From contig CP075493.1 of the NCBI GenBank assembly GCA_021613535.1, positions 13,578,001 through 13,642,000 on the forward strand: 64,000 nucleotides of DNA, written 5' to 3'. Positions 3,936 through 19,620 of the stretch are shown here, piece by piece (position 1 is the stretch's first letter; every line of letters starts with the position of its first letter). A program made the position numbers and the translations under genes. The DNA is from Adineta vaga (lineage: Eukaryota; Animalia; Rotifera). The notes under the pieces are model-generated. The model saw only the letters and a program-made list of their open reading frames with translations. It was not told where the DNA came from and searched no databases.

Positions 3936-5666
3936 TTATTCGATAATGGAAGATTTTTGTGCTTCTACGACGACGTTTGGTAATGTTTTTTCCGAAAGAA
4001 ATTGTACTGTATTCTTTCCATCTGATGATGACATACATGCTGAGATAATTTCAGCTGGTGAATGAACATAATCTTGTAATTGAGATATATCAATATCATT
4101 TTCTTCATTAAAAAAATTCAATAGAAATGATAATGTTAGTGGATCGTTAGGATTCGTCTTTTCATCACCTCAAATTCAAACACAAAAAATAAATAAATAA
4201 TGAACTTACAATTACACACATGTTGTTGCTATTCAACTAACCTAAGATACTTCTCAATGTTTGATTGGATAGGTTCTTTTTTCTTAGATCGATGTCATCG
4301 TCTTCAAGATGAAATATAATATTATCACCTTCAATTGATGTTACTATATCTGATTTTTCTGCGGACACAAATGTAGATGTAGATCGTTTTTTAATAATAT
4401 GTGACACTAATTAAAGAAGAAGATGAATTAATCATTCATTTTTCGACTAACTCACTACAATCGATGTCTTCAAAAACGATAATCTTGTGACTAAAATCCA
4501 AATCAGTCATATCGTAAGAATTCAAAAAGAAAGCTTGTCGAAGTTCACCACATGTTCGAACACATGATAGTGGAATTTCAACCAAATGACGTTTTGTATA
4601 TGAAGCAATGGCCTTGATTGTTGATGTTTTACCACATCTTATATGAATCCAAGGACAAATATACCCTCGAAATGAGAATAAACAAAACATACCAGGTGAC
4701 CCATAAAATAAAAGACCAAGCGAATGGGCTATACCACGTTTCTGATAAAAATTTGGATTTTTGAGAAAAAAATTCAATCGATCGATCAATTCTTGTTTTT
4801 CTTCGAAGAAAAGATTGTCAAATGATTTTGTTGTAGCAAAAAGTTGTTTGTTGAAGTTAATTGAAGAATTTGGATTTGATAACGTCGACATTGACATAAA
4901 TGTGAAATGATAAGAATTTCCTTATGAGAAAAAAAACCCAGAAATACTCGAATTACAAATTGTAATTTACAGAATAAAGTTCACCTTTATTTTTTCCTTT
5001 AATATAATCTAGATATTCCATTGTCCATTGATTTAGATTTTCTTTTAATTATTTTAATGTTAATTTATACGAATAGAGTATGATTTTATATTGTGGAACG
5101 TTACTATTTCGATATGAATATGAATAATCTTTTGAATCTGATTTTTTCTTTTTCTCAACATGAAGATAAATATTTGGTGCAATCAGAATATCTTGTTTGC
5201 CTGTTGATGTAATAAAATAATTGACTAAGTCATCAAGAGGATCTTCAGTTGTTTTTTTCTATATTTATTCATAAACGTAGGAATCAATTTAGCTGAACAT
5301 ACATTAATATTTGCTATATGAAGATAGTGAATAACACCCAAATATTCTTCAGGAACCTATAGAAAATTGTTCTTTTGTACAAAAACAAACTGATTACGTT
5401 CGTTATATATATATATTTACCTGCATTCGAGTTTCTGTAATATCATTTGAATTGGTCATAATATCTATTGCATATCGAGCTTTAAGTCGTCGCCAACTAA
5501 TCGATGAAATAAGCGATTGTAATTTCTCTATTACAGATGAACATAATTTACTAATACATGTTATACAAAAAACACTGATTATAATAATTAAACAATCATT
5601 CCAAATATTTCCTGACTTGATATTTGTAATCAAAGGTTGCATAACATAGTATGAAAGATCCACCAT
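3936..5666 (-). pseudogene. BCS1-like AAA ATPase, probably disrupted
   Basis: N-terminal TM segment, Walker A GSPG|CGKTS split by an in-frame intron, Walker B IIVFEDID. After TLSFLLN the expected DG...TTN...DPAL.RPGR block is absent, and a stop occurs near 4230. Confidence 0.65.
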
Positions 5667-5907
5667 GATTGATAATTTTCTCGTCTGAATAAAAGATATA
5701 ATCCATTCGGTGTCCTTTTATAGATGAACTTTAACATTGTTTTGAGAAATTAGAATCGATCACTCGGTCAACATATACTTCATCATCAATAAAAAAAACA
5801 AGATGGAAAAGTTCAACTAACATGACATTCTTTCGTCCAATCATACTATAATCATCTTGTTTATTATTTAAAAAAATTGATGTCAAAGTAATAGGTTGAG
5901 GACATGT

Positions 5908-6417
5908 CTACTGCACTCTCCAACGCACAAATGCCCATTCCATGGTATCGCCATTGGGAAGTATCATTGATGAATCTTCTCCGTCATGTTTAATCAAATT
6001 GACTCCAAGACCAGGTCGACCTATCGACAAGCTGTTACAAAATTTATGACCAACTTGTTTCTTCGCACCATCCAAGCTAATCTCATAGCCAATGTGCGGT
6101 TTCTGCTTACTTCCAGTTGGTGGAACATCGGCATCAATTGTAAACTTCAAACGCCATGTATCACCTACACAATTGACCGACGTACCTTGAACAATAGTTC
6201 CCGATAAAGAAAAGTCAACTTGAACGATTCTATCAGTTAAGTTTCTATGGAAATTTGTCAGATACGATGAGTTCAACACTTTTTCAATAATCGCTTTGGT
6301 AGCACCAGGTGGTACTGGAGCACGTACAGTTTTCATCTTTTCCAAATAATTTTGAAAGTCTTTCACTACCATCGTGTTTGCAGTAGCTAAATCTGGTGCA
6401 TCTTGATCAAAAGACAT
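5908..6417 (-). CDS. Hypothetical 169-aa protein
   Basis: Clean ATG-to-stop ORF with higher GC than its flanks. A plausible 5'UTR intron lies at 6543-6468 (GTAAGT...TTTTGTTCTAG). Confidence 0.65.
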   Translation of the reverse strand: MSFDQDAPDLATANTMVVKDFQNYLEKMKTVRAPVPPGATKAIIEKVLNSSYLTNFHRNLTDRIVQVDFSLSGTIVQGTSVNCVGDTWRLKFTIDADVPPTGSKQKPHIGYEISLDGAKKQVGHKFCNSLSIGRPGLGVNLIKHDGEDSSMILPNGDTMEWAFVRWRVQ

Positions 6418-7396: not shown

Positions 7397-8949
7397 ATGA
7401 CTACAGCAAATAATACTTCGCAATGTTCCAAATGCCAGATGCCTAAACAAATTACAATTTCTAATGAAGGTTGTTTAGAAGAATTTTGTCAAACAGATTT
7501 TAAAGAACATCGACAAATGTTAAATGAGGACTTAGATGTTATTATTAATGCTTATCATCAATTTGGACAAACGATCATGAAACATGTAGAAAATATACAA
7601 AAGCATGCATTAATGCAACAAATTGATCAGTGGGAAAGAAATGCAATTCAAAGAATTCAACAAACAGCTGAGAATTGTCGACAAACTGTTCTTGAAGAGG
7701 CAAAAATAGTTTTTCGAGAAATTGAGCATAAATTGAGTCAGTTTACTGAACAAATCAAAAACATACAAAAAGAAGCAGAATTTAATGAAAATGATTTGAA
7801 TGATTTGAGAAGTAAACTAAATAAAATGAATAACGAAATCAATAATCTATCAAATATTGCAATTCAAGAATATCGTCAAGAATTTATTAATGAAATTTCG
7901 ATTATTTCAACAAACAGTAAGTTAGAACTAACTTGAATTATTTTATTTGAAAGAAGAAAAAAAACCTTCAGTTCAATTATTGAATGAATAACAACTGAGT
8001 TATGGTTCATCGAACAAATCTTTTGCTTTTTCACCGTTGTTTAGAAACTAAATTCAAAGAACAACCAACGATTATAGCTGGAGGAAATGGACAAGGAAAT
8101 GGATTAAATCAACTTTACTGGCCTTATGGAATATTCGTTGATGAAAAGAAAACGATTTTTATTGCTGATTCTTCGAATCATCGTGTTGTTGAATGGAAGT
8201 GTAATGCAGAACAAGGTCATGTCATTGCGGATGGAAATGGAAAAGGAAAGAGAATGGATCAGTTATATCATCCATCGGATATGATTGTTGATCGAAAAAA
8301 TTATTCGATTATCATTGCTGATTGTGGTAATAGACGAGTGACACGACGATCATTCGATCAAAAACAAGAAATTCTTATTGGAAATATTGGCTGTCGAGGT
8401 TTGGCAATGGATCAATATGGATTTCTGTATGTCTCTGATTGTGAAAAGCATGAAGTGAGAAAATGGAAGTTAGAAAAGATCAATGAAGAACGGCACGGAA
8501 CGTTAGTTGCAGGTGGAAATAAAAAAGGAGACGAACTCAATCAACTTAATTCTCCGACTTACATTTTTGTTGATGAAACTCAATCTCTTTATGTTTCAGA
8601 TAGAGAAAATCATCGTGTGATGAAATGGAGAAAAGGTGCAAGCGAAGGAATTGTTGTAGCTGGTGGAAATAGTCAAGGAAACAACCTCAATCAACTGGAT
8701 GGTGCTGAAGGATTGTTTGTTCATCAATGGGGTCAAATTTATGTAGCAGATTGGGGGAATCATCGAATAATGCGATGGTGTGAAGGAGATAATAAAGGCG
8801 AGATTGTTCTTGGTGGAAATGGTCAAGGAAATGAGTTAAACCAATTGAGCTGTCCCATTGGTTTATCATTTGATTTCGAGGGAAATCTTTATGTTGCAGA
8901 TTGTGGAAACCATCGGATCGTTCGATTGGATCCATTTGATGAAAATTAA
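7397..8949 (+). CDS. B-box-like/coiled-coil + NHL-repeat protein (RING-less TRIM-NHL-like), copy 1; exons 7397-7916 and 8045-8949
   Basis: CxxC...C....C..D...H zinc motif and a coiled coil in exon 1. A phase-1 intron joins in frame to six NHL blades (GGNG.G...QL..P.G...D..NHR). Confidence 0.88.
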
Positions 8950-9117
8950 ATCTGAATGGAAAACGAAGAGATTGGTGACTAAAGAATGATGGTTTTCATT
9001 TGATTTTTGCGAAATAAAATAATCTAATGAAAATGTCTTATGATCGTGATCGAGAAAAAGAAGAACGACTGTTGTATTGGCGCGATTATTTTAATTTTAA
9101 TAGTATATAAAATTACA

Positions 9118-10724
9118 TTAAACGTTCTTCTCTGCTAGTGCGAGAACATTGGGTATTTCAGTATAAATGTAATCTCTATATTTATGAGTAAGTTTCATCC
9201 GGAGAAATGCTTTGAACGGAATTGTTTCTTTAAACCACAGAGTACCTGCTGTTGAAGTTGTGCTAACATGTTTTTCAACGGCCTTACGAACGATTGTCCA
9301 ACCCTTGTGCGAATAATGAAGATCCAATGCACGCACCAGTCGGTTCATTTGATTTTGAATGAGACAATGAAATACTTTGGTGTACACGTCCATTATATCA
9401 TCAGTAACGATGCATGAATTAGGGAACACATCCAGCTTAAATGGAGTGGTACTTTCAAACTGTTCTCTATGAATTCGAATACCACCAAAATCTCGTATAG
9501 CAAAACCAATTAATTGTCCCGTGCGTCTATCGAATCTGGCAAGTGTATTTTGTCCATGTGCTTCAAAACAAAATCCATACTTTATCATTGGTGGCAAGAA
9601 GGCAGCACAAGCAAGTTCAGCATATCGTGTAAGAAAATCGATACATTTTTGTTCGGTATCAAGATGAAAGATGGCTGAACAACAGGCATACTACCATCAG
9701 GTGTTTTCTCAACGAGACATTGTGCTACGATAATTGATTCATTAGGCATAATTATTTCAGGATCTTCACGTATAAGACATGCAATATGTTTGTTTATTGA
9801 TTCATCAGGATCATTTGATCCGATTGATGCTACTTCACCCAATACGACGAGACACTCAGGAGCAATGAATTTAGCAAGTGGACTAATACGAGGACCATTG
9901 TAAACCGAATAACAAGAAATAGTTCGCCATGCACCCGTCGTCAATATAGTTAGTGCCATTTTGACATGATAGCCTGGTAAATCCGAAGCAGGTACCGGTG
10001 CAATTGATCGAAGCGATGCTTGAGCGAAAGATCGTCGTTCCACGTTTGGATAAAGCGTTGCCGATGGAATCAGTGAAAGTACTTTGGACACTTGCAATTC
10101 ATGAACCGGTAAAATGAGAGTGTCAGGTGATAGTATCGGTGGAATATAATCTTTCATTATCGCCTTCCAATTCCCGTAAATGACCAACTTTGAACGAGGT
10201 ATCGAGATAAATTTGATACACGGAGCTAATAAGACAGATTCGAAACCATCAAAAGGCACTCGTGTACGATGCATTGGATGAGTTGGATGACCTTCAATGA
10301 TATAACGTTCCCACTCGATAGCCGGCGACAAGATAGATGGAAGTTTTGTAGGAAGATGATTATATATCCATTCTTGATTTCGAACTGAGCTCGTCAATTG
10401 TTTTTTTAAATCGACAGTACATTCCTTCCAAAAACGATCGGCAATTTCGACAGGACAAAGAAGCTCTTTACCATTAGCATCAAAAATATGGAATGGTACG
10501 ATGTCAGCAGGATCTAATGAATGTAGATAACCAAGTGGAACCGGATGAACCAGCGAAAGAGACAGTTTGTAATTTATATCATTATCATCGAGACACTCTA
10601 TAATAACAGTATAAGGTGCATTAGCATTGGCTTGAACAAAACATTCATTGACGAGGCATGCAATAAGACGCGAAGATGTAGCGAAGCGAGCCCGTTCAAG
10701 GGCAGTACGATTAAACGATGGCAT
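9118..10724 (-). CDS. IucA/IucC-family NRPS-independent siderophore (NIS) synthetase, rhizoferrin-synthetase-like; one 1-nt frameshift near 9678
   Basis: Motifs EGHPTHPMHR, PVHELQ, AQASLRS, VKMAL..LTTGAWRTIS, FEAHGQN and IRDFGG. Adding one base at about 9678 fuses both ORFs (MPVV-SAIFHLDTEQKCIDFLTRYAELACAAFLPPMIK) into about 535 aa. Intronless. Confidence 0.88.
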
Positions 10725-12160: not shown

Positions 12161-13256
12161 ATGGCCATGATAAATGACACAATACAATGCTTGAAACTTT
12201 CGTTAACAGATCATTCGATGAAGTCATCAATTGAACAAAAAGGCAGATTTGTTTTTCATTTGAGTTTGAAAGAAATACAATAAAAGTACGAAAAGATTCG
12301 AGAAATAATAAGTTCTATTTCAGATTTTATCAAATTAGAAACGATTTCTTTTTTCAGAATTCAAATTTCAGCAATATGGAATCATTGTTGCGGGAGGAAA
12401 TCGGAAAGGAGCAGAATTGAATGAACTGTGTAGTCCGTGTGGACTCTTTGTTGATAAAAACAAAACGATTTTCATTGCTGATTGGAAAAATCATCGTATT
12501 TCTGAATGGAAATGTGATGACAAACAAGGACGAGTTATTGCAGGTCGAGAAGAAAAAGGAAACGGAATAGATGAATTAAATGAACCAATAGGTGTGGTTG
12601 TTGATCAACGAAATTATTCGATCATCATTGCTGATCGATGGAACAGCAGAGTAGTACGATGGTCATCTGATCAAAAACAAGAAATTCTCATTGAAAATAT
12701 TCATTGTTACGGTTTAGCGCTGGATCAATATGGGTTTCTTTATGTTTCTGATTCTTCGAAAAGTGAAGTGAGAAGATGGAAGTTAGAAACCATTAATGAA
12801 AACAAAGAAGGAACATTAGTTGCAGGTGGAAATGGAAAAGGAGACAAACTCAATCAACTCGACTATCCTACTTTCATTTTTGTTCATGAAGATCAATCTC
12901 TTTATGTTTCAGATTCAGATAATCATCGAGTGATGAAGTGGAGAAAAGGTGCGAAGGAAGGAATTGTTGTGGCTGGAGAGAATGGTAAAGGAGACAATTT
13001 CCATCAGTTAAATTGTCCTGAAGGATTGTTTGTTGATCAATGGCGCCAAATCTATGTTGCAGATTGTGAAAATCATGGAATAATGCGATGGTGTGAAGGA
13101 GACAAAGAAGGTTCGATTGTTGTTGGAGAAAATGGAATAGGAAGTGAATTAACTCAATTGAATCGTCCACGAGGTTTAACATTTGATTTGGATGGAAATC
13201 TTTACGTTGCTGATTGGGGAAACGGTGGAATCGTTCGATTTGATAAAATTTATTAA
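12161..13256 (+). pseudogene. B-box/CC-NHL copy 2: intact NHL exon (12358-13256), first exon reduced to a stub
   Basis: ATGGCCATGATAAATGACACAATACAATGC at 12161 matches the start of the paralogs, but the coiled-coil part is missing. The NHL exon is open. Confidence 0.7.
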
Positions 13257-16488: not shown

Positions 16489-17352
16489 TCAATTTTGATG
16501 TTCTGGTACAATTCTTTTTTTCGGAAAAATAGCAATACGATTGCCAAGATCATTCAGAAATTGAAAACCGGATTTTTGATATAATTTCTTTGCAGATATT
16601 GCTCCACTACCTTCTTTAGCACATTTTAAACATAATGTACTATGATAATTTAGTTGTTGATCTGGAAGATTAGAAACAATTCCAACAAGATAATTGACAA
16701 TAATTCTTCCAAGTCCTTTGGATTGATGAGTACTATCAACAGCAATATCGGATAAGTATCCAAATATGTCATCCTTTGATTTTACTAAGAATAATCGTCC
16801 GAATGCACAAGGACAATTATTTATTTTATCTAAAACCATTGCATTATTCGTTGCTGAATTGATTCGATTGCACATTTCTTGAAAATCCCATTTTTTTGAC
16901 CAAAATGCTTCTCGATTCATTAATACGCGCACTTGTTCGGCATAACTAAATATCCGTTCTCGATCCGTTATTAATTCATATTGTTCTTGTCTATCTTGTA
17001 AATTATTTTCAGGATAATATTTCATATGATCCATAGTAACAGTCATAAAATCCGGTATGACATTACGATATTGCAATTTATCAAATGGAATTTGATTATC
17101 GAATGTTTTGGGAAAACGAATACATATCAGTGAATCATATAAACTCTCGATATAAGTAAAAACAGCAGAAAGAAATTGATCAATTTGTTGATAATTATCG
17201 GATGGTATTGTAATTTGATTGAAAATAATCAGTACAGTATGATCAGGAATATCCGCAGCAATATCTCCTTCAGCAATTAATATTGATTCTTGATCATCAT
17301 TTGTCTTTACTTGTATTTTGGTCCTATCTTCATTTAAACTGATAACAAACAT
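16489..17352 (-). CDS. GNAT-family N-acetyltransferase with N-terminal extension, bacterial-like, intronless
   Basis: AFW...CAFGRL...GYLSDIAVDSTHQSKGLGR (acetyl-CoA Q/R-x-x-G-x-G motif) and KKLYQKSGF. Confidence 0.8.
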   Translation of the reverse strand: MFVISLNEDRTKIQVKTNDDQESILIAEGDIAADIPDHTVLIIFNQITIPSDNYQQIDQFLSAVFTYIESLYDSLICIRFPKTFDNQIPFDKLQYRNVIPDFMTVTMDHMKYYPENNLQDRQEQYELITDRERIFSYAEQVRVLMNREAFWSKKWDFQEMCNRINSATNNAMVLDKINNCPCAFGRLFLVKSKDDIFGYLSDIAVDSTHQSKGLGRIIVNYLVGIVSNLPDQQLNYHSTLCLKCAKEGSGAISAKKLYQKSGFQFLNDLGNRIAIFPKKRIVPEHQN

Positions 17353-18510: not shown

Positions 18511-19620
18511 TCATTGTTGACATACTATACGTTCAGATTCGTAAATAGTATCAGCTAAGTGTATTGACATGGCTACAATGGTCAAAACAGGATTCCATGA
18601 TCCACCAGTTGGCCATAATGCGCCTCCAGTGATATAAACATTGTCTATACCATGGAGATGATAATCAAGTCCTACTGGTGCTTCAATGTCTTCATCATCA
18701 CCAATCGACATTGTTGAAGCATCATGAACAATCAAAGGTTTACGTATTTCGTCTGATAGAGGAATATCTTTTTCCCAAGTTTTATCAGTTTCATGCCAAT
18801 ATTGAAGATCATTATTGTCTGAATCGGATGAAATTTTGTTCATAACTGCAAATATTTTATTATCCATACAATCCCATAATGCTTTATCCTGTTCATTCAG
18901 GAGAACCTTTAACTGTCCGTTAGTAGTAAGGGATTGAGAATTATCGATCAAATCAAACTGTTTATTTGAATTCTTATAGTCCAGTTCTCCTAATGTTGAA
19001 CATGATACTACAATATAGCCCTTCAATGTATCGATACATTCTTTAAGTATTGAATTCGCTGAATATTTCTTGCAAATTTCATGAATATAGCTATCATTTG
19101 TATGTTGTGTATAATTTACTCCAGATAATTGAAGAGGATATTGCGCATCGCCTTTCATACCTTTAATATAAACTGCTTCCAACTCGACTTCAGACGCATT
19201 GACGGCTAATGATAGATGAGGCCGAAGTACGCGTACTATTACTGAACTGACAAAATGAGCTGTAAATCGCTTTCCAACATTTGAAAGAATTAAGTACGAG
19301 TGTCGTCGCAGGCAATGTACTCATTGCTAAGACCAGCTTACTATCATTGGGAAGTAAGATAATTCCTTGATTTGTTTGTAGTTCTGTCGCTCTTTGTCCA
19401 TTATGCAAAATTTGTTCCACTATGCAATCATGAATGATAATGACATTTTCCATAGATTCTAATGTTTCCACAGTGGAAAATTTGATCAATCTAAGAAAAT
19501 AAACATAGATTCTGTGAAAAGTTACAGAAAATTTCAAATCTAAACTTACTGATTGTTGCTCATAGCGAGAGGGGCATACATAACTTCATTAATTGATTCG
19601 ATGTTTGTAGCACTATCTAA
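18511..19620 (-). pseudogene. 5'-truncated GMC oxidoreductase
   Basis: C-terminal GMC motifs VHDASTM, NVYITGGALWPTGGSWNPVLTIVAM. Frameshift near 19285 (LNSF / NVGKRFTAHF). 59-nt intron at 19549-19491. No N-terminal GxGxxG present. Confidence 0.75.

Follow-up and report, generated by a model that had tools for sequence, protein, structure and literature searches.

The window analysed here is a 64,000-nt stretch of the Adineta vaga genome (contig CP075493.1, positions 13,578,001 to 13,642,000). On its minus strand, at positions 9118–10724, lies an intronless NRPS-independent siderophore (NIS) synthetase gene with an IucA/IucC part and a FhuF-like part, running from an ATG at 10724–10722 to a TAA at 9120–9118. 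Its 1607 nt (3n+2) amount to a 536-codon frame minus one base, and the gene is accordingly read as two ORFs. The ORF at 9585–10724 (minus strand, 379 aa) matched Pfam IucA_IucC (PF04183; window:9588-10724:-) with an E-value of 1.2e-23 and 84 bits at a cut-off of 25 bits, and the ORF at 9118–9597 (minus strand, 159 aa) matched the FhuF-like C-terminal domain (PF06276; window:9121-9597:-) with an E-value of 3e-14 and 54 bits at a cut-off of 25.2 bits. This predicted pair of domains is the standard architecture of NIS synthetases. The start codon agrees with the N-termini of the orthologues described below, and two ATTAAA hexamers 17–28 nt past the stop codon (9090–9101, minus strand) are possible polyadenylation signals. 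The motif GHPxHP, common to AsbB, AlcC, DfoC and IucA, is present as EGHPTHPMH (10269–10295, minus strand). FEAHGQN (9547–9567, minus strand), in which E, H, Q and N are invariant in the family, and RDFGG (9481–9495, minus strand), in which R and G are invariant and D nearly so, both lie in the second part of the gene. The motifs GHPxHP, SxR, K..RT, RE and EAHGQN could be aligned with AsbB, AlcC, DfoC and IucA. In a 50-sequence family alignment that takes in bacterial members, and in which the window protein was read through with an X at the break between the frames, 19 columns were invariant, and all of them were kept in the two frames. For database searches, the protein was entered solely as its two separate pieces. 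The sequence-only reading of the locus had been a full-length, intronless IucA/IucC gene with all main motifs, which both Pfam matches and the presence of EGHPTHPMH, FEAHGQN and RDFGG bear out.

We compared the gene with the intact protein of A. steineri by tblastn, which matched frame -1 through ...GSMPVV and frame -3 from AIFHLDTEQK on. The part before the break (9678–10724, minus strand) comprises codons 1–349 with the N-terminal region and the IucA_IucC domain, and is 75% identical to the A. steineri protein P0002. The part after it (9118–9675, minus strand) comprises 185 codons and the stop codon with the FhuF-like C-terminal domain, contains no internal stop, and is 89% identical to A. 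steineri. Between the two, at 9676–9677 on the minus strand, only CA remains of a CGA codon for Arg-350, the middle G of which is missing outside any homopolymer; the window reads GTT C-A GCC, as against GTC/GTT CGA GCx/ATC in A. steineri (two loci) and A. ricciae. A single defect, a missing base near 9678, had been noticed beforehand; the break at 9677–9676 is only 1–2 nt away, and beyond it no further stops, indels, gaps or introns were found in the gene. An intron spanning the break was considered and rejected, since the sole GT...AG pair there is 20 nt long and would delete conserved residues, and since the orthologues align gap-free through the site. Because the frameshift precedes the EAHGQN/RDFGG catalytic core, a literal reading truncates the protein before that core, and 10 of the 19 invariant residues, those of EAHGQN and RDxG among them, are lost if the frameshift is translated.

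The gene is situated 13.6 Mb into an 18.1-Mb contig. Tail-to-tail with it, across a spacer of 168 bp, lies a host-type NHL-repeat ORF (8002–8949, plus strand; Pfam NHL, 2.6e-30), which has a paralogue at 12417–13256; these two NHL ORFs flank the synthetase gene and are about 67% identical to each other. A stretch of 65 nt separates the NHL ORF from a B-box/coiled-coil ORF (7397–7936) upstream of it, so that the two probably belong to one TRIM-like NHL gene that has a short intron. Of the tail-to-tail, intron-containing NHL gene described earlier, the arrangement was thus confirmed, whereas the intron is likely only, given this upstream ORF. A TPR gene is also found among the flanking genes. 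GC3 is 0.27–0.29 in the synthetase gene, 0.21 in the neighbouring host NHL genes and 0.61 in the chytrid homologue, and this host-like codon composition, together with a position inside an 18-Mb chromosome, argues against contamination. No biosynthetic partner gene was found within about 6 kb of the gene or adjoining its orthologues in the sister species. At a distance of 6–9 kb there are a GNAT acetyltransferase ORF (16489–17352, minus strand, 287 aa) and an ORF for a GMC-oxidoreductase C-terminal part (18511–19182, minus strand, 223 aa), both of which may be other foreign genes. A cluster of the synthetase with these two ORFs was considered and set aside, since the GNAT does not belong to the IucB type and the sister species have neither of the two close to their orthologues.

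A. steineri (L002:1027-2640) and A. ricciae (L003 and L004:8001-9620) each have an orthologue that is intact and free of introns, with 537 and 539 aa respectively, the A. ricciae gene being identical in its two assemblies. They are the closest proteins to the window gene (73–81% identity), and their neighbours are eukaryotic (7tm_1, RdRP, UQ_con and RPA_C). No synteny among the Adineta loci was detected by tblastx outside the gene itself. Public records name these proteins only automatically, for instance as 'Aerobactin siderophore biosynthesis IucA/IucC'. We then determined dN/dS by the Nei-Gojobori method, and obtained 0.155 for the window gene and A. steineri, 0.117 for the window gene and A. 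ricciae, and 0.125 for A. steineri and A. ricciae. Past the break, over 185 codons, the values were 0.06–0.08. When the three pairwise distances were split, the window lineage's own branch had an estimated dN of 0.057 and dS of 0.41, a ratio of about 0.14. A comparison of dN/dS across related species had been proposed along with the sequence-only reading, and its outcome, 0.12–0.16 overall among three Adineta species, shows that the gene is under purifying selection in Adineta. Conservation under such selection in sister species indicates a domesticated transfer and not contamination.

The Adineta-type sequences fall into two paralogue clades. Clade I contains a metagenomic fragment as well as the window gene and its intact counterparts in A. 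steineri and A. ricciae, and clade II contains P0004 and P0007, which are intact, a second A. steineri locus (L006:3447-5041) with one frameshift near codon 89, and a copy on a 502-kb metagenome contig (L005:5454-6957) that has lost 24 residues, is frameshifted and carries a GHATHP motif. A clade II copy was not found in the genome from which the window comes, nor was a second copy of the gene in this haploid assembly, where the only other find was a very distant IucA/IucC-like ORF about 747 kb upstream of the window (L010:679-1977). That ORF is intact, encodes 432 aa with an EAHGQN...HRDF core, and matched only FhuF in Pfam (8.4e-6). Over 140 residues its identity with the present family is 28%, and the EAHGQN..RDF core is all that it has in common with the present gene, by which it is classed as a separate, very distant family member and not as a spare copy. 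With intact copies in some lineages and broken or absent ones in others, the family has been kept here and lost there.

Outside Adineta, an intact but more divergent homologue was found in Rotaria sp. Silwood2 (L007:3993-6333, CAJOBK010002213.1). Read exon by exon (L007:3993-4416, 4478-4572, 4631-5295, 5723-6176 and 6244-6333), its five exons give an open frame of 575 codons with 46–58% identity per exon. The four introns are of the GT-AG type and measure 61, 58, 427 and 67 nt, and one of them splits the motif as EGHPTHP|MH. The public model of this gene, P0114, skips exon 3, the largest, and is fused to a DnaJ gene. The Rotaria gene forms a GC-rich island (0.42–0.51) in a contig of 0.25–0.30 GC, and is about equally far from Adineta and from Geranomyces. 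Bdelloids may have acquired the gene once, long ago, or on two separate occasions; the contrast between an AT-adapted, intronless gene in Adineta and an intron-bearing gene in a GC-rich island in Rotaria may mean that the gene entered bdelloids more than once.

The assembly in which the frame break is seen consists of six contigs, 100.8 Mb in all, and is haploid. The published A. vaga assembly is haploid with six chromosomes, and the heterozygosity of the species is about 1.7% (PMC8494291); the assembly appears to be a haploid collapse of a heterozygous genome. We consider it likely that the animal has an intact, working allele, and that the missing base either arose by error in the assembly or its consensus or is confined to one haplotype of the collapsed assembly. 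This agrees with the strong and continuing constraint on the gene, as seen in dN/dS and in the retention of the 19 invariant residues, with the 185 open codons after the break and their 89% identity to A. steineri, and with the apparent nature of the six-contig assembly as a haploid collapse. However, the loss of one base outside repeats is atypical as a residual error in a polished assembly, and neither an exact-pattern nor a protein-guided scan of metagenome contigs turned up independent DNA of this species across the break. A real and fixed frameshift, by which this species would just have lost the enzyme while its sister species keep a working gene, appears doubtful to us. In its favour, the missing base lies outside the homopolymers in which long-read errors concentrate, the genome has no other copy and already lacks the second paralogue clade, and other bdelloid copies are broken (L006, L005). 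Such a pseudogene would have to be very young, as no second defect is seen across 535 codons. The own-branch dN/dS of about 0.14 does not exceed that of the species whose genes are intact, so that the frameshift, if real, covers at most a few percent of the branch. This age limit is on the scale of the allelic divergence in the species (1.7%, PMC8494291), and with that heterozygosity in a collapsed haploid assembly the other haplotype may be intact. Should the break be real, A. vaga would be a natural knockout for comparison with A. ricciae or A. steineri.

To investigate the origin of the gene, a profile word search was employed, which yielded about 100 eukaryotic homologues, nearly all of them fungal; among animals only Adineta and one Rotaria were represented. 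The fungal homologues came from Agaricomycetes, Dacrymycetes, Mucorales (Rhizopus delemar, Mucor), Glomeromycota including Gigaspora, Kickxellales, Zoopagales, Entomophthorales/Basidiobolus, Blastocladiomycota, chytrids and a few Eurotiales, and Fonticula alba was found as well. On sequence grounds the window gene is a member of the fungal Rfs (type A') rhizoferrin synthetase family, to which the stand-alone rhizoferrin synthetase Rfs belongs (PMC10700112, PMC10500206). A phylogeny with fungal and bacterial NIS enzymes, also proposed with the sequence-only reading, placed the rotifers in a eukaryotic, mostly fungal clade apart from the bacterial enzymes; the clade that holds R. delemar Rfs and has the rotifers inside it received a support of 100 against a Glycomyces outgroup. 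The nearest relatives outside rotifers were Geranomyces variabilis and G. michiganensis, with 43–46% identity as against at most 41% for all others, and the string PxPASDLPGYH is common to rotifers and Geranomyces and absent from all other lineages compared. In a quick tree of 58 rows, the rotifer clade (100) was sister to Geranomyces (SH-aLRT 96) within a fungal clade (98). In a careful tree of 19 rows, rotifers, Geranomyces, Fonticula and the remaining fungi formed a polytomy. Hence the donor was probably a fungus of chytrid-like type, and the sister relation to chytrids is not statistically secure. A stand-alone fungal-type NIS synthetase in an animal chromosome had been read from the DNA at the outset, and it is supported by the placement in the Rfs family and by the host-type neighbours on an 18-Mb contig. 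The further proposal of a single fungal-like transferred gene stands as far as family, integration and conservation are concerned; the nearest relatives are chytrids and not Mucorales, in a sister relation that is itself insecure. In Geranomyces variabilis the homologue (L011:3001-4611) lies 220 bp upstream of a same-strand aconitase gene (L011:4832-7264), which may be a citrate-related pairing. Three further homologues of 505–514 aa from metagenome/Logan contigs (P0109, P0110 and P0111) form a clade that branches off close to Fonticula, basally within the eukaryotic family.

Could the gene have reached this position other than by transfer? It might be a gene of ancient opisthokont descent that has survived in bdelloids and fungi alone, or it might be contaminant fungal DNA joined to the contig by mistake. 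We regard both as very improbable. In favour of the former, a tree in which the rotifers branch outside all Holomycota was not rejected by an AU test (p 0.17). However, word-based profile searches found no homologue in other animals or holozoans, and it is mainly for this reason that vertical descent is unlikely; in addition, the best trees nest the rotifers with the chytrid, and the two share the PxPASDLPGYH signature. A contaminant or chimeric join is excluded as far as can be judged from the DNA itself, as GC3 is host-like (0.27, compared with 0.61 in the chytrid), the neighbours of the gene on the 18-Mb contig are NHL, TPR and B-box genes of host type, and the orthologues in three other Adineta assemblies lie in rotifer-type surroundings. 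Acquisition by transfer remains our preferred reading.

Compared with the members from Mucorales and Agaricomycetes, the rotifer proteins lack about 90 residues, owing to deletions of loops in the N-terminal domain and ahead of PVHELQ. A PDB search with a rotifer and fungal profile retrieved AsbB (6e-21), DfoC, AlcC, IucA, IucC, SbnC, DesD and AcsD. The fold itself was assessed on the A. steineri orthologue, which is 75–81% identical to the window protein. The AlphaFold model of that orthologue had a pLDDT of 94.4 and a pTM of 0.93; its full-length superposition gave TM scores of 0.70–0.78 to AsbB, AlcC, DesD, AcsD, IucA/C and SbnC, and Foldseek matched it to every solved NIS synthetase with E-values of 1e-21 to 2e-27. 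In this model, the three-domain NIS fold is complete despite the shorter chain.

Taken together, these findings suggest, with a probability that we put at about 0.7, that the window holds a gene of the Rfs (type A') family which was acquired horizontally, the donor being probably chytrid-like, and which has adapted to its host, is kept by selection, encodes an Rfs-like chelator enzyme and has one base missing in the assembly. The course of events would be as follows. The gene would have been acquired from a probably chytrid-like fungus, and during a long residence in Adineta it would have taken on host codon composition while purifying selection kept it. By analogy with Rfs, the enzyme would bind ATP and Mg, adenylate a carboxyl group of citrate and condense the activated citrate with an amine such as putrescine, and the product would be a rhizoferrin-like polycarboxylate chelator, made with no partner enzyme. 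The break in the frame would reflect a mistake in the assembly or its consensus, a null allele that one haplotype of the two carries, or a loss in very recent time. The model for this pathway is R. delemar, in which Rfs alone is described as sufficient for rhizoferrin synthesis (PMC10700112, citing Carroll 2017), the condensation with putrescine occurring twice and, according to the same account, requiring no other enzyme (PMC10700112). Since no characterised enzyme is closer to the rotifer proteins than about 35% identity, the product is assigned at the level of the family. Such a weak carboxylate chelator might serve to take up iron, to keep it away from microbes and fungal parasites, or to buffer metals.

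The presumed substrates, citrate, a diamine and ATP, are present in every animal. We know of no animal that makes NIS siderophores of the microbial type, and it is a tentative, rather speculative suggestion that bdelloids make their own rhizoferrin-like carboxylate siderophore by a chytrid-derived one-enzyme pathway; if so, this would be the first NIS siderophore of animal origin. The enzyme family is a known one, and so is the route, horizontal gene transfer into bdelloids; what is new is the kind of host. To our knowledge, most of the biosynthetic acquisitions described in bdelloids are bacterial, and this gene offers an example of transfer from a fungus to an animal. Across bdelloid species the family shows maintenance as well as decay. 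A single enzyme conserved by selection in Adineta makes it directly testable whether an animal can both make and use a fungal siderophore. Our literature search found nothing that links rotifers to IucA/IucC, NIS enzymes or rhizoferrin, and the supplements of bdelloid transcriptome papers contained no IucA or FhuF entry. The study of bdelloid NRPS/PKS clusters (PMC11258130), in which siderophores were set aside as a likely product class, does not mention IucA/IucC in its text or supplements.

In comparison with known systems, the bacterial NIS synthetases (AsbB, AlcC, DesD/DfoC, AcsD, IucA, IucC and SbnC) share the fold and the ATP and substrate motifs with the rotifer protein at 15–18% identity, and they act in multi-gene clusters with tailoring enzymes and transporters, whereas no such cluster is seen at the window locus. 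Rfs of Rhizopus delemar and Mucor lusitanicus has the same IucA_IucC and FhuF-like architecture, the same stand-alone arrangement and the same motifs (EGHxTHPMH, SLRS, K..RT, FEAHGQN and RDFGG), and falls with the rotifer protein into one eukaryotic clade well apart from the bacterial enzymes. In contrast, identity between the two is only 33–35%, the Adineta gene has no introns where Rfs has six exons (PMC10700112), and the host is an animal. The IucC-family proteins of Geranomyces resemble the rotifer protein in their short length (536 aa in G. variabilis) and intronless genes, but the Geranomyces gene is GC-rich (57%, GC3 0.61) and adjoins an aconitase gene. Within bdelloids, the NRPS/PKS clusters (PMC11258130) are likewise foreign secondary-metabolite enzymes that have been domesticated, and some of them have gained introns, as has the Rotaria copy; they differ from the present gene in their bacterial origin and in being NRPS/PKS enzymes.
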